From assembly GCA_047495785.1 (NCBI GenBank), contig JBLDXI010000019.1, forward strand, positions 1,116,001 to 1,180,000: 64,000 bases of DNA, written 5' to 3'. Below the pieces are notes generated by a model, which was not told where the DNA came from, searched no databases, and worked only from the letters and a program-made list of their open reading frames with translations. Source of the DNA: Lepidodermella squamata (lineage: Eukaryota; Animalia; Gastrotricha). Positions 11,719 through 33,400 of the stretch are shown in pieces. Positions within the stretch are counted from its first letter, which is position 1; each line of letters starts with the position of its first letter. The position numbers and the translations under genes were made by a program.

Positions 11719-12772
11719 ATGTCAAGTTACACTTCGGCGTTATTTCACGTTTTTGTGGCATTAGCTGCGTGTGGTAGGTGAGGCAGCGTGCCCTTTGCAG
11801 CATTCTATTACATTTCTATATCTATCGAATACAGTAGCGGATGCTGAAAAACCAAGCAGCGCTCCAAGCCTCGGGGCAACGACTCGGAAACCAGAGGGGA
11901 CTACAGGATTCAAAGTCAGCCAAACATACCTGCCGTTTTCTACAATTAAATATTCAGGATCAACGGTAGCTCCGAAACGAGCAGACAGTGATGCGAAAGC
12001 CATAACAACTACCTGGAGACCAGAGGGGAGCATGGGAACAGGCAAAGATGGAGTCACGCGCCCAACTCAATCTTACCCAGCATTTACTACGACCAGAAAT
12101 TCCGGAACAGAGAGGTCAACAGCTTTCTATACAACGGCTGTTCCGAAGCGAAGCAGTGATCCGAACATCTTATCCACAACATTAATGAGGAAACAAGAGA
12201 ATACTTCCGCGCGCCCAGCTACAACTAACCTACCCGAAAGAAAGCTTTCAACTGGCAGACCCAGTGAAACTGTGAGCTACAAGCCAAGCTGGCCTACAAC
12301 AAAGTCAGGCAATTATTCTGGCAAACCTGAAAACCAAGCTCGGATAGCTTCAACTTCTTCCCCGCTAAATAAAGGCGCTACGAATTCATCGAAGTCAAGC
12401 TCGACAGACAAAGCACCGGGCGCAGGCAAAACAATGAGCAGTCTGCCACCGACACCTAAGGATAAAGGAGGTAACCACGGCAAGTCGGCAAGTAACTTAT
12501 CTACAGGCAGGACAACCCCAACAGCACGTCCCAAGGCCAGCCCTTCTGCAAACCCGAGTGGAACGAAGACTACAAAGGAAGCTGTTAAATTGACACGTCG
12601 CCCTAAATCGACAACTCCTTCAACAGCAAGATTGACCTCACAAATAACGACGAAAGCGGGCTCTCGTGCGAACTCAGGCCAGGTTAAGCCCAGTACCAGC
12701 ACAGTTAGGCCCAATGCTCCTGGTGGAAACGGTAACGACGAGGACATTGAGGAGCAGAGCGAGGAATGGTAG
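11719..12772 (+). CDS. Secreted Thr/Ser/Pro/Lys-rich mucin-like protein 2 (paralog of 9832-10940)
   Basis: Exon 1 (11719-11773) MSSYTSALFHVFVALAAC, phase-1 intron 11774-11834, then VADA-EKP...; acidic tail DEDIEEQSEEW; AATAAA at ~12865. Confidence 0.8.
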
Positions 12773-12952: not shown

Positions 12953-15250
12953 TCAGCTTGGAAGCATTAGCTTTTCGATTGCAGCAGTGAGCCTGATGCA
13001 GTCAGCGAAGGAATCTCCCACCAGCCTCAGTGCAGTCGTATAGTAAAATTGAGCAGCCTGATAATGAATAAATTAACGAGCCAGTCTATAAATGAGATAT
13101 CCCAAAAATTACCGAAGTTTTCACCGTGTAAAGCCCGCAAAGAGCAGTCCCATCAAAATTTGGCATGTTGATATGCCCGAGGTCTTCAGAACGGAGCCAA
13201 GCCAGAACATCAGAATTAGTCCAGCTCTTTATTTTCTTATCGATATCTGAACCATGCATAGGCAAAGGCACAGACGAACTATCAGAAGTGGAAACGAGTT
13301 GAGTGACCAAAGTCTTCAGCATGGTACAGCACTCGCAAGGTCCAGCTGATTGGGTATTAACGTTCGGTTTGCTGGCGATTTCTTCATGTTTGGTAGTTTC
13401 CGAAGCTTTTATCGGGTATAATGGCTTATTATCAGCGTCCATTTTCATGTTCGTAACACTGCGAATTTCCTCGAATAATTTACCGCTGACATCTTCCCAA
13501 GGGTACTTCTCCAACGAAAAGTCAACATATAATCTCGCGCCAAGGATGATACCCAGCCAACCAGTTGGCGCGTACCTAAGCCATACATTTTAAAAATTAT
13601 TAAAAAAATCGAGGTTAATTACCTGTATTGCATATTTACAGGAACTAATGGCTTTCCCAATCGGAAAACGTACTCCGCCTCAGTTCGGCACATATTGCTA
13701 AGCTTGTAATACTCGCTGTAGCAAATCAAAATTAAATACGCGTTTTCGACACCCTAAAATGTCAATTAATAAAATCTGCCTTTAACTTTGTCTGACAAAC
13801 TTTAGCCATTGCTTCTACGGTATTGTTGTGCATGTGATCTACATCCATCCAAATTTTATAGCCCTTGTCAAGGAGGAGCTGTCGAATTCTCAGCGCTGTC
13901 TCCTGATTTTTCCAGCAGTAACTTATGAAAATGTGCCCTTCTTCCTTGAGATTTTTGCCATCTCCATCAGTAGGCTCGCTAATGCCGACCGTTTTCAAGA
14001 TACCTTCCTGGCCAACTTTTATGCAATCAAAAGCTTGGCTAGCCTTTATTCTTAGCGCAGGATCTTGTGACTTTTTAACAACTTTCTCCATAAAGCCATT
14101 GAAATTTTCATTAGCGAGGACTTGAAGCCGAATGTCATTGTTGAAAGCCAATGCCCATAGACAATCGATAGCGCGGCTGACTTCCAATTCGTCCTTCGAA
14201 TGTAACATTTCGACAAGCAGAGGTAGCGCGCCCGACTGAGCGATTTTTGCTTTATTATCGTCATTCACGGCCAGATTTGCCAGACTTTGAGCGAGTTCTT
14301 CGACTGAAAAGCCAAGATGAGAATGGTGCTCAGCCCTCGAAATGTCGTCTTTGCTCAATGCCATTTCCAGACATTTCACTAATTTCGAAATTATACCTGA
14401 AAATCCGAAAAATTTACTGTTAGTTTTGAGCAAATGGCATGCTTTTATACCGGACTCGTCTAGAAAAGCAGCAGCTGCTTTTGAATCACTCAGCATACAA
14501 GATATCGAACAAAGAGCGGAAATTTGCCAACTTTCCTCTTCCCAATTAAAATAATATTTCACAACCTGAGTAATAAACTCTTATTTTTTTATGATTTTTT
14601 TATTAAAAATCAAACCTCAACGGCATTCACGGCTTCGTAGTACTCCTTTGATTCAGGCATTTTCGCAATGTTGTGTATAATGTATAAATTAGTTGATATA
14701 AATGAATGCCGTTCGGCGTTGCTTCGATTGCTTTCAGATCCAACATTTTGAACCAGAGTTGGGATCAAATTACGATCAACGAACAATCGGCAAGCATCTT
14801 GACTGACGTCTGATGCTGTGCAAATGGTCGCGAAAACGATTTGCGCTCCATTTTCGGGTTTCACCTATGGGCAATTTTTTTTATTTAATTTGAACCATAG
14901 GTAGATGGATGATAAAATCTGCCGAACCTCTGTTGAAATTCCAGGCCAGCTACTAATGTAAACGCCGACATCCACCAAAAAATCTGAAAAATTGAATTTT
15001 CACAAAAATTTTGAAAAAAGCAAAACAACCAGGTCAAACCTAGATATTTTATTTTACAAAACATATCGCAGATTGCTTTTCGAACGGGTTTCGGTTCTTC
15101 ACTCAACGAAACGTAGATCTTTCGGGCTGTCGCCAACGGTGGGATGGTAAAAAACCCGGCGACCTTGTTGTCATGATGATCGCAAATCGACATAACTTTC
15201 TCGGCGAGGCCCCTGAAATGCTCAACCGTTTGCTTTGTAGCTTTGTCCAT
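12953..15250 (-). CDS. ARM-TIR-SAM protein A (multi-exon)
   Basis: ARM-like repeats (SGALPLLVEML, DCLWALAF). TIR: HIFISYCW..WMDVD..SNMCRTEAEY..GWLGIILG. SAM-like WTNSDVLAWL..FDGTAL. Confidence 0.88.
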
Positions 15251-15300
15251 GATTATTAAATTTCTAAAAATTTATTTGTTAAAATGCATAATTTTTCCAG

Positions 15301-17433
15301 CTAATTACCAAGTAAATGTTCGAGAGAAGCAGTGATTTTAACGCAGTCTATGAAAGAACCATCAAGTAATTGCAACACCGATTTATAATAGAGGTCTATA
15401 ACTGAAAATTTCATGTTATATAAACCAATCAAAGCGTGTCCGTCGAATTGCCCAAACGCACTCGTTAAAGTTTCCATCTTCTCAGCAATCAGCCATTTCT
15501 CAACGTCAGAATTTGTCCATTTACGCACTTTTGCAAAATTGGCACCTTCTGGAGGGTCAAGCTGGACCTTTCGGCTAAACTTTTCGGCTAATAGAGATTC
15601 GAGAAGGCTACAACGCCGACAAAATTGCCCTGTATCGTGAGAATTAACGTCGATTTGAGGTTTTTTAGGCGCTGAGGTTGTTAAAACATTCTGATGATGA
15701 ACTTCCACAGGTTTCTCAACTTCTTGGGAAAACTCGGCTTCAAGTTGACGAATTTCTGTCAACAGACGGTTCGAAACTTTTTCAAAGCTGTGCTTCTCGA
15801 GTGAAAAGTCAATGTAGAGCTTGGTTCCAAGGATAATTCCCAGCCAGCCGGTAGGGAAATACCGATACTGCATGTTGATAGGAATGAACGGTTTGCCCAG
15901 TTTGAATACGTATTCCGCTTCACAACGGCACATGTTCGAAATTCGGTAGCTTTCCGAGTAACAAATCAGCACAACACTCGCGTTTTCAACAGCCTGAGCC
16001 ATGGCCTCCAACGTGCTGCCTCGCATGCGGTCAACATCGACCCAAACCTTGAAGCCCTGATCTAAGAGTAGTTGGCGAATTTGTAGAATAACATCTTGCT
16101 GTTTCCACGAATAACTTATGAAAATGTGCTCATCTTTCGCGGCTTTTTTCTCATTTTTAGCCTCGCTTTTCTCAATAAGACCTTCCTTGCCGAGTAGAAT
16201 AAAATCACGAGCCCGCTCAGCTTTCATTTTCAGCTGTTCGTTTTTCGTGCTTGACATAATTTCGTTCAACTGCTGAACGACGTCTTGCCTTTCCTGGTAC
16301 AAATTACTGCAAATTCAAAAAATTTCGAAGATGGCGAAATCTACCTTAATTTTCGAGCGAATTTCATCGCTGAAAGACAACGTCCAAAGGCAATCTATAG
16401 CGCACCATTGCTCGATCTCTTGTTCCTCAAGTTCATTTGGCGAATCGTGCGGTAGAAGCATTTTGTACAGGTCATCAATCGTGTCGCCGTCAATGATTTT
16501 CATTTTATTGTCATCATTCACGGCCAGAACAGCCAGGCTTGCTACCAGCTCTTCGGCAGAAAAGCCGTTCGACGTGTGATCATCACTAGACATAGCTTCG
16601 TGGAGGCATTGGGTCATTTTCGGAATTATCGAATATTCATCGAGTAAGTCGTTGGTAGCGGTTGTTTCGCTGAGTAAACAGGCGATGGAACAGAACGCGC
16701 TCACCTGCATTTTCTCGTTAGGAACCGCGAAATAATGCTTCAGAGCTTCGATAGCCCCTGCTTCTTCAAATTGCTGTCGAAGTTCGGCTATTTTTGCAAT
16801 GTTATGAATTGTCGATAGCGCATTCGATACAACGCGCTGCTCCATATCGTTGGACAAGCTCAATTTAGCAGTATCGGATTTTATGTATTTCACAAGAACA
16901 GGTAGCACTCCCTTTGCAGCAAATACCTTCGAAAAAACCGATTTTACTTTCGAATAAAAAATATTACGCTAAACCAACTTTTGCAGTTTCAAGGCTTGCG
17001 TCGCTAAACATGCAAATCAAAGCCATAGCACACTCTTTGTGAAAAAGGCGAGAGCGAGCAGGATCTTTCTCCCATCGGAACACGTAGCTGACTGGATTCT
17101 TGTCATTCATTACGTAAATCAAGGATTTAGCGAGAAATTCTTGGTAAAGCAATTAAACTGAAATTGCTCGAAAAATGGGGCTATTTGAATCTTACCGTTG
17201 AAACCGGGGACGGTTTTATCTTCAGCTATAAGCTTCCTCCAAGGGCGCCATTTGAAATATTTGGTGTAGAAGTCCATATGCAATAGGACGGCTTTGGCGG
17301 TGCTGTAAAATTTTGCAATGTCGATCTTTCCGCCGCTACTGGAAATGGTTTTCAGCACTAATGAAGCCATTTTTCGAAAGTATTCCACAGCCTTATCCTG
17401 CGTCCATTCAGCATCGCCATCAGCGTCACCCAT
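15301..17433 (-). CDS. ARM-TIR-SAM protein B
   Basis: ARM-like exons (IHNIAK, DCLWTLSF). TIR: HIFISYSW..WVDVD..CRCEAEY. SAM-like WTNSDVEKWL..FDGHAL. Confidence 0.9.
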
Positions 17434-17505
17434 TTTCAATTTTTTTAAATCCTAAGAGATGAAAAGTCATTTATAGAAAATTTCAAATAATTTATGTAAA
17501 AAAAT

Positions 17506-19887
17506 CTAGTTTGCTGTATCCTCCAAAGCAGCCGTGAATTTAACTGTTAGAGGGAAGGAGTCGTTGCACAAACGTAGCACAGTTTTGAAAAATAAATCAG
17601 GCGCCTGAAAATAATTTTATATAAAAGGCCGTAAGTTCATTTTTTGTTCAACTTACGGAACTTTTCATATCACGAAGACCTGCCAACGCTTGGCCATCGA
17701 AGTCGCCGAAAGATTTAATCAAATCATCAGGAAAATCTTTACTTCGAAGCCATGACCCAACTTGTGAGCTTGACCAGCAATTTTGATTTACAGCTTTGGA
17801 ATCGCTTCTTTGGGATTTTTCAACTGAACTGAAGCTTTCGTTAGCTTCGAGTAACGATTTCGTAAGAGCTTCGACCAAGCCGTAGAGCTTGTCGACTTTT
17901 TCGGACAACTGTCGACAATCGCTACAATTTGGTTTGTCGACTGAACTCGGAATAACAGCCCCGCTTAAATTTGATGGTCGATTCGAAGGCTTTATTGCTG
18001 TTTGATTGGCTTCGCCTCGCTCAAGTACACTAATTTCCTCTAATAATTTGTAGAAAACATCGTTGAATGGCCGTTTCTGAAGTGAAAAATCGACGTAGAG
18101 CCTCGCGCCGATAATAATCCCTAACCAGCCGTCAGGTTGATAGCGGTACTGAAAATTAACTGGAATGAACGGTTTTTGAAGTCGGAAAACGTATTCAGCC
18201 TCAGTTCGGCACATATTTGAAACTCGATAGTCCTCGCTGTAGCAAATGACAACGACGAAAGCTTTTTCTACCGCATTAGCCATAGCTTCCAAGGTTGAAC
18301 CATGCATTCGGTCGAGATCGAGCCAAACATTATAGCCGTTTTCGACTAGAGCATCTCGTATTTTGACGACAATTTCCTGCTGTTTCCAGCTGTAACTCAG
18401 GAATACGTGGCCGTCCTTACGGTTGATGATTGCTTCAGACCTTTTGGCATCTGCCTTGGCTATCATCCCGTCTTTCCCTAATTTTATGAAGTCCAACGCA
18501 TTCCGAGCTTTCGCCTTCAAATCGAAGTTATCTTCATCTTTCGTGATTTCTTCCAGATTGCTCATGCATCCAGAATGCTCGACTAGAATTGATTTTCTCA
18601 CTTCTTCGTTGAAAGCTAGCCGCCACAGGCATGTGATGGCTCGGTCTTTGAGGACCGCATTTTGCGTAAGCATGTTATTCAAATTTGGCAACATTCCGCA
18701 AGTTAAAAGCTGCAAAAATATTATGTAAAATTTATCACAGGAAGCAGTGAAAATCCACCTTAATTTTGTTCTCCTCATTTATTGCCAAATTAGAGAGGAC
18801 GTCTGTCAATTCCTCCGCTGAGTATCCGCGATAGGCTTTCCTTAGCTTCTTCTTCATCGCTTTAGAAACGTAATCGACCAGTCTTGGAATTATGTCTGAA
18901 GATGAAAATTTCGAATTATAGGACTAATCTGAAAACTGAATAAATTACTGTATTCGTCGGCGAAGCTGTTAGCGTCTTTGTCATTTAGGATATAGGACAA
19001 AACACTGAGGGCTGTCATTTGCGCTCGAGGTTCTGTTTCGTCGGGCAGGTAGAATTCCAATATTTCAACTGCATTGCATTGCTGGAATCTTTCCCTGCAT
19101 TCTGTCACTTTTGCAACATTATGAGAAATCGACAGGCTTTGAATTGCCAAGCGAAAGTGAGCCTGCAAATGATTTTGTTAAATTGGAAATTATGTAAATA
19201 TATCGTTGAACTCACGGCTTTTTTCAAATTCGACTTGATTTCGTTATCATTCAGAATTTCCATTAATTTGGGGATGATCCCATTTTCTGCGAAAAACTTT
19301 ACACAAAATTGATTACTTGGAATTTGAATAGGCTAGAGATTACCTTGCTAGCCCGATAGCTGCAATCGGTAATGACTACTACGACCCGAAGCAAACTAAT
19401 CGCATAAGTCATATCGCTGAGATAATCACATTCCTTGACGGCTTGAAGAATCAACTCTGAAATATTCATGAAATAATTTTATGGAGAAAATGTGATAGTT
19501 TCAATTACCCATGAAATCAGTCCCGCATATCCCTTCAATTGCAGGGACCCGCCACGCTCTCGCCCATGAACTCATCGAGTTGCAAATTCTTCGATAGACG
19601 AACGACGTGAATGCAAAACGAAGCCTGTTTTGATCATCAGCCGGCTTCGATGCGACCATGGCTGAGATTGCATCAGCCCTGTGACGTAATTCTTCGATCG
19701 CCTCTTCCTTCGAATGTACTTCGGACGTTTTCTTCAACCCAACGCCAAATTTGGTCAATAAATCATCGGCATCTTCTTCCTCCAAGTCTTTCGCTGAAAT
19801 TGCTGGTTCTTGTGATTCGGCTGAAATTTCTTCGGCGTCGAATAGTTCATTGTTAGGCTCCTCCGATTCTTCAACACTGGATGCCAT
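17506..19887 (-). CDS. ARM-TIR-SAM protein C
   Basis: Acidic N-terminus MASSVEESEE, ARM-like exons. TIR: HVFLSYSW..WLDLD..CRTEAEY. SAM-like WSSSQVGSWL..FDGQAL; last exon APDLFFK..AN*. Confidence 0.88.
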
Positions 19888-19936
19888 TATATAAATAGTA
19901 TTCACCTAGAAAATTTAATTTCATTCAAAAAAGATA

Positions 19937-22078
19937 TCACGAAGAATTTTCGCTCACAACAACAGGTAAACGTTCAAGAGATTCAGAAAACTTCAAAACA
20001 TCAACAAGCGAATTATCAAAGCACTTTGTTAGCGAGGAATAAAATATTTCTGGTGATAACGTTTTCATCTCGTAAATCACAGATAAATGCCGCCCTGTCA
20101 TGTCCTTCAGCAAGCTAGAAATTCGAAAATTACTAGATAGAGATTGGGTTTCAAGCCATTTTTGAACGTCCTGACCGGTCCATTTGTCAAGTTTAGATTT
20201 CAGGTAGGCGATCGACAGCAATTTTCGCCCCGCTCCACTTCCAGGCAACGAAATTTCCAGCTGTTTTTGTTTAGGTGGATCGACGATTTTCGCAGCTGAG
20301 TGAGTCGAAGGTGCTTCTTCGTTCTTCGAGTTCGATAGCAAGCCATTCATCTCAGTTAGCATTTTAGAGATCGCTTCTTCAAACGGGGTCTTCACCAGGG
20401 ACATGTCAACGTAGAGCCGAGCTCCAAGAATCAACCCTAACCACCCGTCAGGTCGATAACGTCGCTGCATATTGACCGGAACGAAAGGTTTTTGAAGTTG
20501 AAAAACGTACTCAGCCTCAGTTCGGCAATTCGGGCTCTGTTTATAATCTTCGCTGTAGCAAATCAGAATCAGGCGAGCTTTCTCGATAGCAGATGCCATT
20601 GCTTCTAGCGTGGATCCTCGCATTTCGTCAACATCCATCCAAGTTTTGAAGCCTTTGCTCTTCAAAACATCGCGGATTTTTATGCAAGTTGGTTGGTTTT
20701 TCCAGCAGTAACTAATGAATATGTGCCCGTCATTCGGCGAAGGCACAGCCGATTCACTGCTTTTTGATAAGTTTTTCTTGCCATTTTCGATGAAATTCAG
20801 AGCCTTCGAGGCTCGAAGACTAAGACTCGGCTTGCTTTCATCCGCAGCTAGTTCCTTCAGTTTCTTCAGGATGGATTGGTTTTTTAGAATTTGCAGGCGT
20901 TCGTTTTCACTGAAAGAGAGTGTCCACAGGCAATCAACGGCTCTGAGCTGCTCTTTTTCTTCATTCGAATTCAAAATGCGATCTAGAACAGGTAGAATTC
21001 CCGCGGCGATGAATTTCGGTTTATTGGATTCGCAGATCATTATTTGGTTCGCCCCATCAGCCAATTCTTCGACTGAAAAGCCGAGGTACTGATGATTCTG
21101 AATGCTCATAGCTTCGTCCATGAACGCTATCAATGTCGGGATTATTCCTGGAATAAAAATGAAAAAGAATCATAAATCGAGGGGCTGGGCATTTCGAGCC
21201 TAAAGTTGAATTTTTAACATTGAATAACTTTTCGAACCGTTTTCATCGGCGAATTTCGCGCTGTCTTGCTCGCTGGAAATGCTGGCGATCAGCATAAGAG
21301 CCATACATTCCCAGACCTTCTGCTTGCAAGTCAAGTAGAACTTCGCAGTATCCACAAAATTCAGCTCGGCCAACTTTTGCCGACATCCCGCGAAACGTGC
21401 GATGTTATGGGGAGTTCCTATGTGGTTTTCTATCATTCGATTGACTTCAGCCGAATTTTCGATCATTTTGCGCAGCTCAGGGCTATTCAGAACCTGGCTG
21501 CACCACTTGAGATACGCATCGCCCTCAAAAGCCATGCACATCGAGAAAGCTTCGCTGAAATTGGACCAAGTTACAGCTATCGAGGATAGATAATATGCCC
21601 ACATGAGCATTGATTTCGAAGTCGGCAACTTGCCGATATCAAACCATTGAACACATCTCGCTAATACCAGTGGCAAATCGTGACTAACTGCTTGGGAATC
21701 AATGATTTCCTTCCTGTGTGAAGTGATTTCCAAATAACTGCACATGAAGATCGATTTCACGACGTGGCGAGCTTCGATATTTTCCAGCAGATCTTCCTTA
21801 GTTTTGGCAGCCCGGTCTACGCATGCGCCAAGGTCTTGAACTAGTTTTTCGAAGGTAGCAACGCCAGTGTTAGATTCACTCAAACCGCCATTTCTCAGCG
21901 AACCTAGAGCTGACTGGAGGCGATCGCGGTCGAATGCGTAGAAATCAGTTGGAGGTGAGTCAATTGACGCGGAACTGGTAGCTTTGGGTGATTTCCCAGA
22001 ATTCGAATGGTCACTTCCTTCTCGGTTTGATTGAATAGTTTTCTTCGATGGAATCACGTGCGATTTTTTTTTATTCAT
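19937..22078 (-). CDS. ARM-TIR-SAM protein D (two exons)
   Basis: ORFs 21200-22078 and 19937-21133 are joined by a phase-1 intron. TIR: HIFISYCW..SPNCRTEAEY. SAM-like WTGQDVQKWL. Confidence 0.9.
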
Positions 22079-22202
22079 TTTTTGATAATTGAGTCACCTA
22101 AAACAATAGATTTACTCATTAAAACAGCAGCCGGAAAATAAAAATTGCACAATATAAATTGCATCGGGTATCGAGTATATCATCGGGTATAATTTGGCAG
22201 CT

Positions 22203-25200
22203 CTAATCGTCATCCCACAGGCGATCAAGGGCGCCTAAAACTCTCAGTAAGCCCTGCAGAGGCCCGTTGTAGTGTTTCGATACTGTTTTATAGTAAAACT
22301 CTGGGGCATTCGATTTCATGGAATGCAAAGTCTGAAGCATATCGCCGTTGAAATCGTCAAAAGCGTGTCCAAATCTAAAATCAGAAAATACTGATTTTGC
22401 CGAAATCAAAATTCGAAACTCACTCGGACAATTTTTCGCTTTCAAGCCACTTGGCGACTTCCTCTTTCGACCAAGTATTGCACTTCAATTTTCGTACGGA
22501 TCTTGGTCTCTCTTCAATCGGATCGTGAACAGCAGTACTGTGCCCGCCTCCAATCGCCTGCCGAGGTTGGGCGGGTTCAGTAGAGGGTTGCTGCGATTCT
22601 GAATTCGATGAAGGTGGCGCCTCCAAAGACCCGAAGGCTTTTATTTCTCCGATCAACATTTCGAAGGCGGTGTCAAATGTCCGCTTCTGAAGCGACATGT
22701 CGACGAATTTTCGCGACCGAACCATAATTCCAAGCCATCCATCAGGGAAATAGCTTGAAAAATATCAGGAATTCAAATAAAAAGACTAATGAATTTCCAT
22801 TCTTTACTGGTATTCCAAATTAACAGGAACAATCGGTTTGCTGAGAGCATGAGCGTATTGCGCTGGACGATTGATAAGAGGTTCAGAGCAAATTAATAAA
22901 TTTAGGTTGATTAATCACCTTCAGTGCGACAGGGGTTACTTTGCTTGTAAGAGTTCGAGAAGCAGATCAGTACAACGGAAGCTTTTTCAATCGCATCAGC
23001 CATTGCTTCAAGCAAATCTCCGTGCATTTTGTCAATGTCCATCTAGATATAGGTAAGATATATTTATATAATAGATTTTCTCAAATTCAAAGATGGAGCT
23101 AACCCAAACTTTGAAATTATTTTTCATCAGTTCTTGTCTGATTTTCAAAACAACAGCCTGTTGTTTCCAGCTGTAGCTGATGAAAACGTGGCCACCATTA
23201 GGCGAGGCCGACTTCCGGCCGCCACTGTCTTCGTTCGAAGCCTCAGCCTCGGCAACTTTGACGACCCATTTTTCAATAAAAGTCAACGCTTTCGTTGAGT
23301 TCCGGCGCACATCAGCCGAGGTTTCGGCAGAACTGCTGAGTTTCCGCATTTGACCCATAAAATCATACTGGCTTTTCAAAATTTGGTTTCGAGCCGATTC
23401 TTCGAAGCTCAATGTCCATAACAGATCAACGCCAAGATTTTGCAGATTAGCTTCGCCAGTCTTCAGCAAGTAATCAATGACTTCCTCGACCTTATTTTCC
23501 ATTAAGGTGGATTTAATCGAATCGTTAACTGCGATCAAAGCAAGTCCCTCGATCAGTTCTTCCAGCGAGTAGGCGCAAGACATAGTTTCAGCGCCCCTCA
23601 CCAGTATATTGCAGTATCTGTTAGTATCTTCCATTGCTCTTTTCACATATTTTACTAGATGAGGTACAACATTCTGCTCGTGAGCCATTTGTGCCGCTTC
23701 AGGTGTATCGCTGAGAATGTGGGCCAAACACAATATCACGAGGGATTTCGTTAAATCGGACATATTTAGATATTCCCTGAGAATCTAAAACGAAAATTTG
23801 CCAAATGTTCACGATATTGTAGCCAAGTTACATTAACGGCATCGTATTTGATGAAATCGCCTCGTAATTCGATACTGCGGGATATGTTGTAAGTCACGTT
23901 CAAAAGAACGAAATCCAGATACTACGAGCATAGATGAATGCTGAAAACTGAATTTATTAAAGATTAAAAATGCTCACTGTATCTTTTGAGCTCAGGTTTC
24001 TTTCCGCTTTTTTCCGCTCGTTTAAATGATCCAGCAAGAGCTTTATGACGCCAGCTTTTCCCAAATCCTGCATTCATTAAGCTGAATTAATGCTTCAATC
24101 GGTAAAAGATAACACACGATTCGAAATTGCGGGCAGCAATCTGTAAAATTCCATAGACCAGATACTAAGGCGAGGCTGCAGTGATAATTTTCTGTTACAG
24201 CGATCCCATTTTGAATGTAGAACTGCAGGTATTTAAACACAATATCTGGAGAAAATACCAAATGATAAGCTTTCAAAGGCTTTGCAGTTGGGAAAACAGG
24301 TCAGACCTGCGTATTTTTCACTCAACAGAGCATCGAGCAGATCTTGCTTCCAAATTTTGTATTGCTGATAACTGGTGCTCATCAAGTTGAGAACAGTGGC
24401 GATTTCGCGACTAGCCATTTTATCAGGAGTGAGCTCGGCATGCTTCGCCAAAAATTTCACTCGAATTTCCGTCTCGCTTTTGATGTCACTCCTTGCGACG
24501 AAGTTCGAATTCTTCTTGGTACAGAAACCCTGCTTCGGAACGAAAGGACCATACGCATCGGCTTCATCCTCTTTATTCTGGAGACGTCTCTGCCAAGCAT
24601 CGTATTCGTGGTAAAACTCCCTTATACGGACGCTCCTGCGAACATCCTCGAATGTGAGATCACCAGTCGTCTCCGACATTTTATAAACGGCCATAGCCCA
24701 ACCTTGACTCATAGAATGCTTGCAGTAACTCCGAAATAGCAGAGAGCCGATTTCTTGATCAGTTTCATCAGGGCTCGAAACGAATGTCATAACAAATTGA
24801 ATAAGATTTTTCTTGGCAAATATGTCTTTCTCTTCGAATTCGCCACGAGCCACATCACGCCGAACTTTCCACAACAAGCAGTAGTAAGCATTAGCGATTT
24901 GTGACACATCGAAACTCATATAATAGTCGTCCTCGCTATTTTCTATCGCCTTTTCGATGCCGTGTTGTAAAACTGAGCTCAAAGCAGCAAAATTATCGAC
25001 CAAAAAATCGCCGAGACCAACTCTCGCCAAGCAGAACGAGGCGCAAAACCTGACAGCTTTATTGTCAACGCCGCTAAGTTTTTCCAGAACCTATATATTA
25101 TTATAAATAATTTCATTGGCTAAAATTTTATTTCAACTCACTTGTTGAGCCTTCGTCGCCCTTATTTTTTCAAAACTACCAGCTTCAAGAGTCAGTTGAT

Positions 25201-25885
25201 TGATTACATTCAAAACTGACTTCACAACGTGCCATTTTTGCTTTGGAAAATTATTGGAATAAATACAATTAATTTTTCAGGACCAAATCCTAACCGGTGG
25301 ATATTCCTCGGGTGGGGTTTTTTCTGCAATATGCTCGAGAAAATAACAAACAGTTTCCAAATATTCGACCAGAAGAGGTAGAATGCCGCTATCGAGGAGG
25401 CTCTGTAGGTTAAAATTCATCAAAATCGCCGCAATTTCGGGGCTAATATTACATCTTTAAACGCAGAAAACTTCGAGTAGTTGAACAATGAGTTGAACAA
25501 ATTAATGGAAAATTTGTAAGTCGCATCATCCGTTGTTGGTCCAACGTCGAACAAGTACTTGGCTAGCGTGATAGACAAATCTATTTAAATATACCATCTT
25601 AATAAAAAAAACTAGTTCGAATGATCATTTACCGACGTATTTGCCATCAACTAGCACCTGTGCAACATCTGTGTCCCAGTTATTCCAGTCAAAATAAGAT
25701 CGGCTAATTTTCCACATAACGGCTCTTGACTCAGCATTGACAGGTCCATTTTCAAGTAGAGCGCATTTTTCCAAAATCGAGATGCGCCTTCTTGTTTCTT
25801 CAATGCATTCTTCAGCCGTGGTAAAGCTAGCGTTATCATTAGCGATATCGCCACCCAAATCAGGGGTGGGAGTGGGGGATTGCAT
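22203..25885 (-). CDS. ARM-TIR-SAM protein E with extended/duplicated N-terminal helical region
   Basis: Spliced frame from MQSPTPTP through ORF 24233-25030 to the ARM exon 23032-23763. TIR: HVFISYSW..W|MDID..SNPCRTE|AQY. SAM-like WSKEEVAKWL..FNGDML. Confidence 0.82.
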
Positions 25886-30375: not shown

Positions 30376-33300
30376 ATGAGGACGGCGCGGCTCAAAGAAT
30401 TGCCGCCGTCGGTTGTCGACGAATTTATTAACATGCAGCTAAAGAAATCGCAGAACGGTGATGACGTCTTGGCTAATGTCAACTCCACAGATATCCCCAG
30501 CGGAAAATTGAAAGTTGAGTATCGCCTGATAAAAAAGAAGAAGCGTGATTCGAAAGGCGGATTCGTCCTGCCCGACGTGAGTGGCAGCCCTCATTCGCTT
30601 CGCTACACATCACCAACGCCGAATTCTCAGCGGCCTGCGGGTGGACAGATAATTTTGAAACCGATAGAGCACAACGCGGTGCCTCAAGCGATGCCCGAAC
30701 GGAAAATTGTCAGAACACCAGAATTGATCAAATTGTCTTTACAGAGACTCGGCTCGTTTGAATCTGTCATGTTTCCGTTTCGAGGCTCCACTGATATGGA
30801 TTCTATACATAAACAATTGCCTGCTATCGAGCAAACTTCTGCCCTCAGTGGTAACTTTATTTAAATGGAAGAGTAATTACAATATCACTGGCTTTACTTT
30901 CAGCTAATCCTTCCACTATCACTCACAACTTTACTTGTCCGAACTGCAAATTCAATATCGTGAAAGGTGCGAAATTTTAATATTAAACCAGACTAGCCAT
31001 AATCTTTGCATGATTCTTAACATTTTTAGAGCTCTTTGTCACCGTAACTGAAGATGGCAGCTCTCAAAGCTTACATGAAAACAGAAGACATCACAAATGT
31101 AAGTTGAAATTAATTTTGTCATTGTGAGTAGAATTGTGCATGACTAACAAAAACAGCCGCCGAAAGATCCGATTCAAACACAGGGTCTGTAACAATGGGA
31201 ACTCAAACCGAAGCAGATGCCATATCTGGTTCTCCCGCTTCTCCGAAAATGTCCCCAAAAAGTAATGAAATTAGAAGTCGCGTGTCATCTTCACTTGAGA
31301 TGACAGTAAAAGAGAAAACAAAACCGGTGTCTCCATCTCCTCCTCGAATTCCTACTCCTGCTCCTCCACCTGTTGTAGTAGATAGTACTAGTGTTACTAA
31401 AGGTACTTCTGACTTGAGTTTGCTTGGGTGAATTTTAAGTTGGTTTATGTTAAATTGATTGATTTAGTAGCATTGTTCTGCTATTTTTTATTAAATTTTG
31501 GAAAATAACGCTTATACGTTCGTTTTTCCTCATTAGAAACCGAGGCTGAACCTGAACCAGCTAAATCTCATCGAGAGTCAGCCAAGCCCGATCATCTGAG
31601 CATTGAAGATCTAAAATTGATCGAAAAGTGCCGTAAAATCGTGAGAGCAGCCGAATCCAATGGAGATACGGAACAGATTCATTCAGCCATTCGTCAGCTT
31701 TCGGTAATTGCTCAGAAGCTGCTAACGCCGATGAGGGGCTCCGATCTTCATCACAATCGATTTGTTTGCGGGAAAATCGGAGATATGCTAGTTGAGGAGG
31801 GCTTCGATATGCGGCTCTACGCGATTCTACACGAAATGACAGCTGAGTGGAGCTTTTTCAGCCAAGAAGAAAATTATCATGTCACATTCAATTTATTCAC
31901 CTGCCTTACGTCATTCCTTAACCGGAGTTTGAAGCTTCCAGCCGTAATTTTCCTCAATCTTGCTTTTTCATTGTAAAATCTGTCATTTTTTCCACAGAAT
32001 TTGGTCGAAAACACAAAGTTTACTGGGGATATATTGCAAATTCTGGGCTATAAAAAGTATATAAATCAGTTGACGCAGAAAAATATTTGGCGGTTTTTCG
32101 ACGCATGTCTAACAATTCTTTGTTTGCTGGGTCGACTTGAAGCGAATATCGAATCTCTTCGATCTCTTGGCACCATTAATTGTGCGAAGAAATTTCTGTC
32201 AACCGGAGATCTAGGCTACGCTGGCCTATGGCTCCCCGCTCTGGTTACTATGAACCAGGTCGCGAATGATGACGAGATCGGAAATGCGATCAAGGGAAAA
32301 CTTCCAGATTTCGTGCCTACGGTTTGCAGTTACATCACATCGTATTTCGAGGACGAAAGATCAGCAGGCGATGAAACTTATCGGTCTATGCAGATGTCTG
32401 TTCGAGACAATTCGGACCAAGCTGCCGGCGAGTCTCAGCGTCAAATAAATGCTACAGGGATGATGCCAGTTGGTGCTGGTGTTGTTCTGGTTGAAGCTGT
32501 AGACGCATTCTTGCGATTCCTCGGCGTTATTATAGCCAAAATTCGCGAGATGAGCAGAGACTTCCAGTTGACGCAATCTGAACTCGACGAACTGACCGGG
32601 TGCTCGATTTTCTTGATGCAATTACCACATCCATCTAACCAGAAGCAATACGAGTCTAAGCAATTGATTGTGAGCGAGTGGCGAAAACTCGTGAAATCCG
32701 GCGTCGAAATAGGCGATTTCTGTGAAGAGGCTGCCTCGCTATTGAATCTCGGCCTCGGGCATGATCAAAATGATCTTAAAGATGAGATGATTCAAGCTCT
32801 CAGGGATTTGATTTCGAATGAATTCAACGAGGGGACGATTAAGGTGGAGGCTGAAGCTTTGTTAGCGAAAATCCAGCACCCTCGTGTGCCAACTCCGGCC
32901 GCGAGAAGCGTTACGGAAACAATAGAACACTCGCGGGTTCAAAATACCAACGAAATTCCCGATGTTGACCGGGAAAAAACCGAAGCTCAAACTAACAATG
33001 ATAACGGTAATCACCAGATTAAAACTTGACGTAGTTTCTATATTTCGGTTTTTATTTCACAGTTTCCGACTCTTTTTCCCTGAATGAAATAATATGGAAC
33101 TCCTCACTGGTTTCGTGGCAGAATCCGGAAGTTCGAGCCTGGATCCGATCCATCGGTCTCCGCAAGTACGAGGAGGAGTTCCAAGAATACGACGGGCCTA
33201 TGCTACTAGCATTGTATGACGTTCGCCGCGAATCACCGCAATACTTCCAGACGGAGATGGTGGCCAAATTGGGCGGCGTCTTCAATAATTTACTCAAATT

Positions 33301-33400
33301 CACAGCCCAGCTAACTAAACTCATCGCAAACAATAATCTAGGCTCGGGATCAGCCGCGGGTGGTGGAGATCAGCTGTCACTAGCTGTGAGCGGAGTATAA
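30376..33400 (+). CDS. ARM-like + SAM-like protein lacking a TIR domain, with long low-complexity N-terminus
   Basis: Multi-exon, with helical-repeat exons at 31617-33006. The last exon WQNPEVRAWIRSIGLRKYEEEFQEYDGPMLLALY..SPQYF..LLKFTAQLTKL matches the C-termini of genes A-E. No FISY/TIR motif. Confidence 0.78.

Follow-up and report, generated by a model that had tools for sequence, protein, structure and literature searches.

Five tandem ARM-TIR paralogs with predicted SAM tails in the gastrotrich Lepidodermella squamata

Locus and gene models

The window analysed here is a stretch of 64,000 nt from the genome of Lepidodermella squamata (Gastrotricha; GenBank assembly GCA_047495785.1, contig JBLDXI010000019.1, positions 1,116,001 to 1,180,000 of the forward strand), and all coordinates are counted from its first letter. 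Its minus strand carries, at 12953-25885, five co-oriented paralogs of ~660-1000 aa, located by open reading frame listing and by tblastn with the large exons, 12953 being the final base of the gene 1 stop codon and 25885 the gene 5 ATG (Table 1). An initial annotation had described five co-oriented genes combining highly divergent N-termini with a strongly conserved TIR, and both parts of this description held: gene models and tblastn confirmed the number, position and orientation of the genes, and mean pairwise identity among the five paralogs was 58% for the TIR (range 49-65), 34% for the ARM core, 33% for the SAM-like tail, and 15% for the far N-terminus. The five genes are members of a catalogued, uncharacterised ARM-TIR family that occurs in molluscs, echinoderms, tunicates, lancelets and green algae. 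The new points are modest: the tail of animal members is identified as a SAM, and the array is both old and collinear, with its genes packed in an operon-like manner; the architecture itself is already catalogued.

Gene models were built as shortest paths using short GT-AG introns only, and were corrected from RNA evidence and by hand. Models minimising intron number were rejected, as their long introns skipped real exons. Full-length mollusc homologs aligned across apparent stops, which lie inside short GT-AG introns (51 nt in gene 2, 90 nt in gene 4), and after removal of GT-AG introns of 47-90 nt each of the five genes gave one uninterrupted frame. The host genome is compact, with very short introns. 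Two parts of the models are provisional, having no RNA support: the N-terminal exon boundaries of gene 1, whose first exons are ambiguous, and the numerous small exons of gene 5. Gene 5 has an extra helical N-terminal extension of ~330 aa, for which no Pfam match was found. Genes 1 and 4 share the codon position of one intron, DE(S/N)/G-I-I with the slash marking the intron (14397-14450 and 21148-21237). Within the TIR, genes 2-4 have no introns and those of genes 1 and 5 are not the same, which points to intron gain or loss after the duplications. Single exons were used as queries for database and fold searches, and joined spliced models for paralog alignment, tree building, and tblastn against metagenome loci.

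RNA evidence came from contigs of a public run that behave as RNA, and the comparison covered genes 2-4. In gene 2 the 51-nt intron (16294-16344) was spliced out exactly, with minus-strand GT..AG ends, and in gene 4 the intron at 21148-21237 was confirmed, an RNA contig with a loose end at 21148 joining the upstream exon that ends in ...GAAAACG. An RNA-derived contig of gene 4 also carried an untemplated poly(A) tail after 19906 (T18 loose end, plus strand). Transcripts of genes 2 and 4 are spliced, and those of gene 4 are polyadenylated. A contig from a second public run, covering 19497-20646, differed at ~3% of positions, which is strain or allelic variation; among the rows listed, the differences clustered in the acidic N-terminal exon of gene 3 (19600-19902) and in the gap between genes 4 and 3.

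Table 1. Coordinates of the five paralogs, the gaps between them, and neighbouring features of the window.
Feature	Position	Strand	Size and description	Exons	TIR (Pfam TIR_2 E-value)	Catalytic-position Glu codon	SAM tail
Gene 5	22203..25885	-	~1007 aa	13, provisional	split by introns	22920-22922 (motif CRTEAQY)	from ~22473
Gap 5/4	22079-22202	-	124 nt				
Gene 4	19937..22078	-	683 aa	2: 22078-21238, 21147-19937	~20327-20725 (9.5e-22)	20516-20518	~19946-20236
Gap 4/3	19888-19936	-	49 nt				
Gene 3	17506..19887	-	691 aa, acidic N-terminus	7, provisional; last exon 17604-17506	in TIR-SAM exon 18709-17657 (2.6e-21)	18200-18202	in TIR-SAM exon 18709-17657
Gap 3/2	17434-17505	-	72 nt				
Gene 2	15301..17433	-	657 aa	17433-17196, 17139-16979, 16926-16345, 16293-15301	in last exon (3.9e-20)	15919-15921	from ~15519, in last exon
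Gap 2/1	15251-15300	-	50 nt				
Gene 1	12953..15250	-	~664 aa	7, provisional: 15250-14896, 14845-14616, 14565-14451, 14396-13801, 13753-13623, 13575-13113, 13057-12953	from near 13935, split by two 47-nt introns	13679-13681	~13223 to stop
TIR-less neighbour gene	31195..33400	+	helical protein				last ~100 aa (33098-33400), homologous to family SAM tail
Ser/Thr/Pro-rich open frame	11771-12772	+	333 aa				

Domain identity

Pfam TIR_2 matched genes 2-4, in which the TIR lies in one exon, at 73-78 bits against a cutoff of 28, and gave partial matches to a split-TIR exon of gene 1 (13762-14562; 30.3 bits, above the cutoff) and to an exon fragment of gene 5 (23032-23763; 25.5 bits, just under it). 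The motifs H(I/V)F(I/L)SY, LEAMA, CRxEA(E/Q)Y and GWLG are present in all five genes. An AlphaFold2 model of gene 4 exon 2 (402 aa), with a mean predicted local distance difference test score (pLDDT) of 85.7, contained three folded domains, of which the predicted TIR (residues 140-273) matched the SPARTA TIR (Z 18.1, root-mean-square deviation (rmsd) 2.0 Å over 129 residues) and the Hydra TRR-2 TIR (Z 17.6), and the TIRs of MyD88, SARM1, RPS4 and AbTir were among the Foldseek matches of the model.

The catalytic-position Glu of the TIR, which had been annotated as retained in all five copies, was borne out by motif alignment, as every gene reads CR(T/C)EA(E/Q)Y; the first Glu of this motif was invariant in 22-25 homologs, along with W, D, C-R, Y, and G-W-L-G, and in provisional numbering is residue 452 of the gene 2 protein and residue 491 of that of gene 4. 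HMMER aligned SpnCRtEAEY with SDWCWDELEQ of Cat1, Glu to Glu, and the strand vFqlrKpiIPl with AFEHQKNIIPI of TIR-1, and an ungapped back-count from the K-x-I-x-P strand placed the Glu opposite that of TIR-1 and SARM1, nine residues before the K of K-N-I-(I/V)-P. For a lancelet protein of the same TIR cluster (B. lanceolatum A0A8J9W3M3), the catalytic residue has been assigned by structural alignment to E489, the Glu of CRTE (Hurieva et al., bioRxiv 10.64898/2026.04.20.719644, Table S4). The TIR-1 strand register, the Cat1 alignment, and this published structure-based assignment all indicate that the Glu of the five genes is probably equivalent to SARM1 E642.

For the N-terminal region, the annotated ARM identity was upheld by profile, sequence and fold matches. 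Pfam Arm matched gene 1 at 26.1 bits against a cutoff of 20.6, and phmmer searches with a single exon found designed ARM proteins (E 1e-6), importin-alpha and Vac8, at E-values from 1e-6 to 1e-3; SARM1 was not reached by phmmer of the single exon against the PDB. Residues 1-125 of the gene 4 exon-2 model matched beta-catenin (Z 18.5, rmsd 1.8 Å over 117 residues) as well as designed ARM proteins, and precomputed Pfam annotations of the homologs were Arm, ARM_PUB and ARM_ARMC5. As modelled, the ARM is closest to canonical repeats of the beta-catenin/importin type. No signal peptide was seen by eye in the five proteins, which are therefore probably cytosolic.

The C-terminal tail follows the TIR after a disordered linker of 30-60 aa. 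Taken singly, the tails of the five genes scored 13.6-21.6 bits, under the Pfam SAM cutoffs, SAM_3 giving 19-21.6 bits against 22.6 for the gene 2 tail, and several other family members match Pfam SAM_1, SAM_2 or SAM_3 singly. A profile of 19 family tails matched SARM1 SAM1 at E 2.6e-5 and the SMS1 SAM at 3e-4, and also the SAMs of TIR-1, liprin and TEL. A tail-only model of gene 4 (pLDDT 87.4) was searched exhaustively against 48,161 chains, and the top ten matches were all SAM domains, including those of Hyphen, Sfmbt, CNK, SARM1, TIR-1 and liprin, with 68-75 residues aligned at rmsd 2.1-3.0 Å and Z of 6-7.3; Foldseek with the SAM tail alone gave no match at E <= 0.001. The Z values are moderate, but since the profile, the Pfam matches of family members, and the fold search agree, the tail was accepted as a divergent SAM, predicted to have the five-helix SAM fold, in line with the SAM-like domain of the initial annotation.

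Two neighbouring features were recorded on the plus strand. The last ~100 aa of the gene at 31195-33400 were homologous to the family tail by tblastn with family proteins (E ~2e-7), and passed both Pfam SAM_1 (25.4 bits against 23) and SAM_2 (22.6 against 20.5); no TIR was found in this gene by tblastn or Pfam, and its product might pair with the TIR proteins through SAM-SAM contacts. At the other end of the array, a Ser/Thr/Pro-rich, low-complexity, mucin-like open frame runs towards the 3′ end of gene 1.

Gene order, age and packing

Age was assessed with a maximum-likelihood tree of the five joined models and 23 homologs. In it the window genes fell into one group with metagenome proteins (support 93/89), to the exclusion of the mollusc, urchin and tunicate homologs, and were interleaved with the metagenome proteins: gene 2 paired with P0004 (100/97), gene 1 grouped with P0003, P0006, P0007, P0010, P0011 and P0012 (97/93), and gene 3 was nearest to P0001 and P0002 by path length, at a fork without resolution. 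A marine metagenome scaffold (ERZ23486764 scaffold_3407, locus L001), from a related organism of similar guanine-plus-cytosine content (40% on this scaffold), carries a collinear, co-oriented array, whose best matches are, in order, gene 5 (590 bits, 45% over 688 aa), gene 4 (456 bits), and gene 3 (432 bits), followed by a truncated fourth gene. On a second locus (L002), a gene-2-type copy comes before one that matches genes 1 and 2 about equally, and a gene-1-type copy comes next; a third (L003) has a tandem run of four gene-1-type copies, a local expansion that the window lacks.

From the interleaved tree and the collinear arrays it follows that the genes had duplicated before the split from the metagenome relative, and that the order was kept. 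Judged by these comparisons, the paralogs are old (TIR identity 49-65%), orthologs of the gene 5, 4, 3, 2 and 1 types exist in a related organism, and gene order is conserved on a related marine-metagenome scaffold. Synonymous sites between paralogs are saturated at 49-65% amino-acid identity in the best-conserved domain. A recent, lineage-specific burst of sensors was rejected on the age of the duplications, which are older than that split. The initial annotation had inferred a set of intracellular sensors with variable ligand-binding ARMs; the N-terminal differences between paralogs are ancient and do not reflect rapid diversification, each paralog having its own ortholog in the related organism. 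The old and kept order argues against a recent diversifying burst, and fits constraint from co-transcription.

The genes are tightly packed head-to-tail, and a pyrimidine-rich stretch lies in each of the four stop-to-ATG gaps and ends in an AG located 14-22 nt ahead of the following ATG. The poly(A) tail of gene 4 starts directly after ...TTTTCTAG (CTAG) at 19906, where an AG resembling an acceptor lies 18 nt ahead of the gene 3 ATG. Short gaps with a poly(A) site at the downstream acceptor look like the layout of a trans-spliced operon, and the conserved order together with this packing suggests that the five genes are co-expressed and may work as a set.

Proposed mechanism and relation to known systems

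The array consists of five intact old paralogs of a conserved eukaryotic ARM-TIR-SAM family. In our preferred reading, to which as a whole we assign a probability of roughly 0.55, their TIRs would be gated by ARM and SAM. In such a mechanism the SAM domain would drive homo- or hetero-oligomerisation, the ARM solenoid, as the variable part, would bind a protein or peptide partner or restrain the TIR, and the clustered TIRs would form composite active sites, converting NAD+ to cyclic ADP-ribose (cADPR)-type or ADP-ribose products, or act as a signalling scaffold; the logic would resemble that of SARM1 and TIR-1, in a separate lineage. By analogy with related TIRs, NAD+ processing by the five proteins is plausible. 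Enzymatic activity and an immune-sensor role are what we would infer, with one weak negative data set on record. Animal TIRs outside SARM1 have been proposed as enzymes only recently (Hurieva et al. 2026), and the ARM-TIR family appears, from the available part of that survey, to be among its largest TIR clusters, with the Glu conserved and activity so far inferred. The five-gene operon-like array would offer a natural set of co-expressed paralogs for hetero-oligomerisation and for division of labour among ARMs.

Several points weigh against this reading. The predicted template modelling score of the gene 4 exon-2 model is 0.44, so its inter-domain arrangement is unreliable, and the match of the Glu to SARM1 rests on sequence register and the published assignment. 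Among the loose ends listed of the assembled RNA-derived contigs, no spliced leader was found. An ARM ligand, autoinhibition, oligomerisation and an immune role are all hypothetical. The strong conservation of one-to-one orthologs, and of the TIR from algae to fish, suits a conserved cellular role no less well than pathogen sensing. For an E. coli assay, the "Active" field is blank for four isolated TIRs that belong to the 40%-identity cluster of these genes and come from Chlamydomonas, Branchiostoma lanceolatum, Lepisosteus and Phallusia (Hurieva et al. 2026, Table S4).

This last record, four of four, also supports taking the TIRs as non-enzymatic adaptors or scaffolds that act through TIR-TIR and SAM-SAM contacts, with the Glu in a structural or binding role, which we consider rather doubtful. 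More than 70% of all TIRs have the same Glu, whose presence is not always matched by enzymatic activity (Toshchakov and Neuwald), and the TIR of the adaptor MyD88 is among the best Foldseek matches. The negative result is weak evidence, however, because the RUN1, RPP1 and RPS4 controls, of which RUN1 and RPP1 are plant NADases, were also blank in the same assay (Hurieva et al. 2026), and the TIRs were assayed in isolation from SAM and ARM. As the SAM directly follows the TIR, the isolated TIRs may have lacked their clustering module, and the SAM identity of the tail is thus one possible explanation for their silence: they may need SAM-driven clustering. Sister clusters with the same HxMISY...(G/E)WL(G/A) scaffold, moreover, are active: the oyster A0A8W8J0Z4, herring and Adineta TIRs make cADPR in a Glu-dependent manner, and a coelacanth TIR depletes NAD+ (Hurieva et al. 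2026). That C-R-x-E, W, D and GWLG stay invariant in both algae and animals likewise suits an active site better than an interaction surface.

As an alternative that we hold to be less likely than not, the array could serve NAD+ signalling in a conserved role, housekeeping or developmental (for example, cell-death or metabolic control), in place of pathogen sensing by variable receptors; this reading draws on the ancient paralogs with same-order orthologs in a divergent relative, on the high conservation of the TIR from green algae to vertebrates, and on the window showing no sign of recent birth-and-death, but the relative has its local expansion of gene-1-like copies (L003), and multi-copy families of this kind are typical of mollusc immune repertoires. 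We regard as quite unlikely a more elaborate version of the enzymatic idea, in which an ancient, collinear, co-transcribed operon would encode hetero-oligomeric TIR enzymes joined by their SAM tails, possibly with TIR-less SAM proteins such as the 31.2-33.4 kb neighbour, and related to SARM1 by domain rearrangement; if true, it would be a second ARM/SAM-gated TIR NADase system in animals, and a multi-subunit one. That some copies are decaying pseudogenes or gene-model artefacts is highly improbable. Genes 1 and 5 need many small introns, the first exons of gene 1 are ambiguous, and RNA contig coverage is of genes 2-4, but all five genes are uninterrupted with short GT-AG introns only, none of the five has lost an invariant TIR residue, intron positions agree between paralogs (as in genes 1 and 4), and every type has an ortholog; a pseudogene array was rejected on the open frames and the kept TIR residues.

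Compared with SARM1, C. elegans TIR-1 and Drosophila dSarm, the ARM-TIR-SAM proteins of the window have the same three domain types and a Glu at the catalytic alpha-C position, and they likely share the logic of a regulatory ARM, an oligomerising SAM and an effector TIR. Outside multi-SAM proteins and fusions, the best solved-structure chain for the family tail profile was the SARM1 SAM1 named above. SARM1 and TIR-1 were the best sequence matches of the TIR profile, at E 1e-3 to 0.03 and over beta-A to beta-B only, the SARM1 TIR match having E 0.03, and the BB-loop region, D-E-M-R-G-S here against E(R/K)LEAG in SARM1, shows partial likeness. The domain order differs, being ARM-TIR-linker-SAM with a single SAM here and ARM-SAM-SAM-TIR with tandem SAMs in SARM1, and the ARM here resembles canonical peptide-binding ARMs (beta-catenin, importin-alpha). 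The tandem SAM pair of SARM1 builds an octamer ring. An allosteric pocket for NMN/NAD+ was not found in the window proteins, though no search was aimed at one. In the available part of the survey tables, the SARM1 TIR falls in a different cluster (representative T1J6E6_2; Hurieva et al. 2026), and the ARM-TIR family is separate from SARM1 and widespread, its members numbering in the hundreds and ranging from green algae to fish. The initial description of the array as a permuted SARM1-like set is thus fair for the logic and fails for membership, as domain order and the single SAM do not fit the definition of SARM1 and the TIR belongs to another cluster.

Enzymatic TIRs of bacteria and plants (Cat1, SPARTA TIR-APAZ, AbTir, RUN1/RPP1) share the TIR fold, with Z of 17-18 to the SPARTA TIR, and Cat1 shares an (S)xxCxxE motif aligned with SDWCWDE; as in these systems, activity would be expected to depend on oligomerisation, whereas the partner domains here are different. 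Near the array, nothing was identified that would act as effector or sensor of a TIR-made signal.

The closest relatives are the ARM-TIR proteins of invertebrates and algae. A word-based search returned 23 relatives, all labelled "uncharacterized" (E 7e-81 to 2e-35), from bivalves, gastropods, a cephalopod, an annelid, sea urchin, tunicate, and marine metagenome contigs, with the molluscan, annelid, urchin and tunicate homologs spanning E 1e-81 to 1e-36. The representative of their TIR cluster, A0A0B7AZE4, has at least 595 mentions in Table S2 of the survey, with members in Metazoa and green algae, and among the Table S2 rows listed TPR-clan (ARM) domains stand beside the TIR and no SAM does (Hurieva et al. 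2026). The motifs HxFISYxW..Q, STLEAMA, CRTEAEY and PDGWLG match rows 149-152 of Table S4 in that survey exactly, and TIR identity to the lancelet cluster member, estimated by eye only, is roughly 55-60%, the cluster threshold being 40%. An "ARM-TIR" class is listed in mollusc immunome papers, including that on Aplysia (PMC9334734), the ecTIR-DC families reportedly described by Gerdol et al. in 2017 also belong among the closest known systems, and in the literature searched no use of the name "ARM-TIR-SAM" was found. The window proteins share with these relatives the motifs HxxISYxW..Q, GSTLEAMA.AVE, CRTEAEY and P(D/T)GWLG, N-terminal ARM/TPR-clan repeats, a length of ~650-700 aa and, C-terminal to the TIR, a tail of ~100 aa. 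In the ESM Atlas, mollusc clusters are annotated Arm and TIR_2, and algal clusters automatically as Arm, TIR_2 and SAM_2, unlike the animal members, whose SAM tail lies under the Pfam thresholds. What sets the gastrotrich genes apart from other invertebrate and algal ARM-TIR proteins is their arrangement, five apparently ancient paralogs in one operon-like collinear array.

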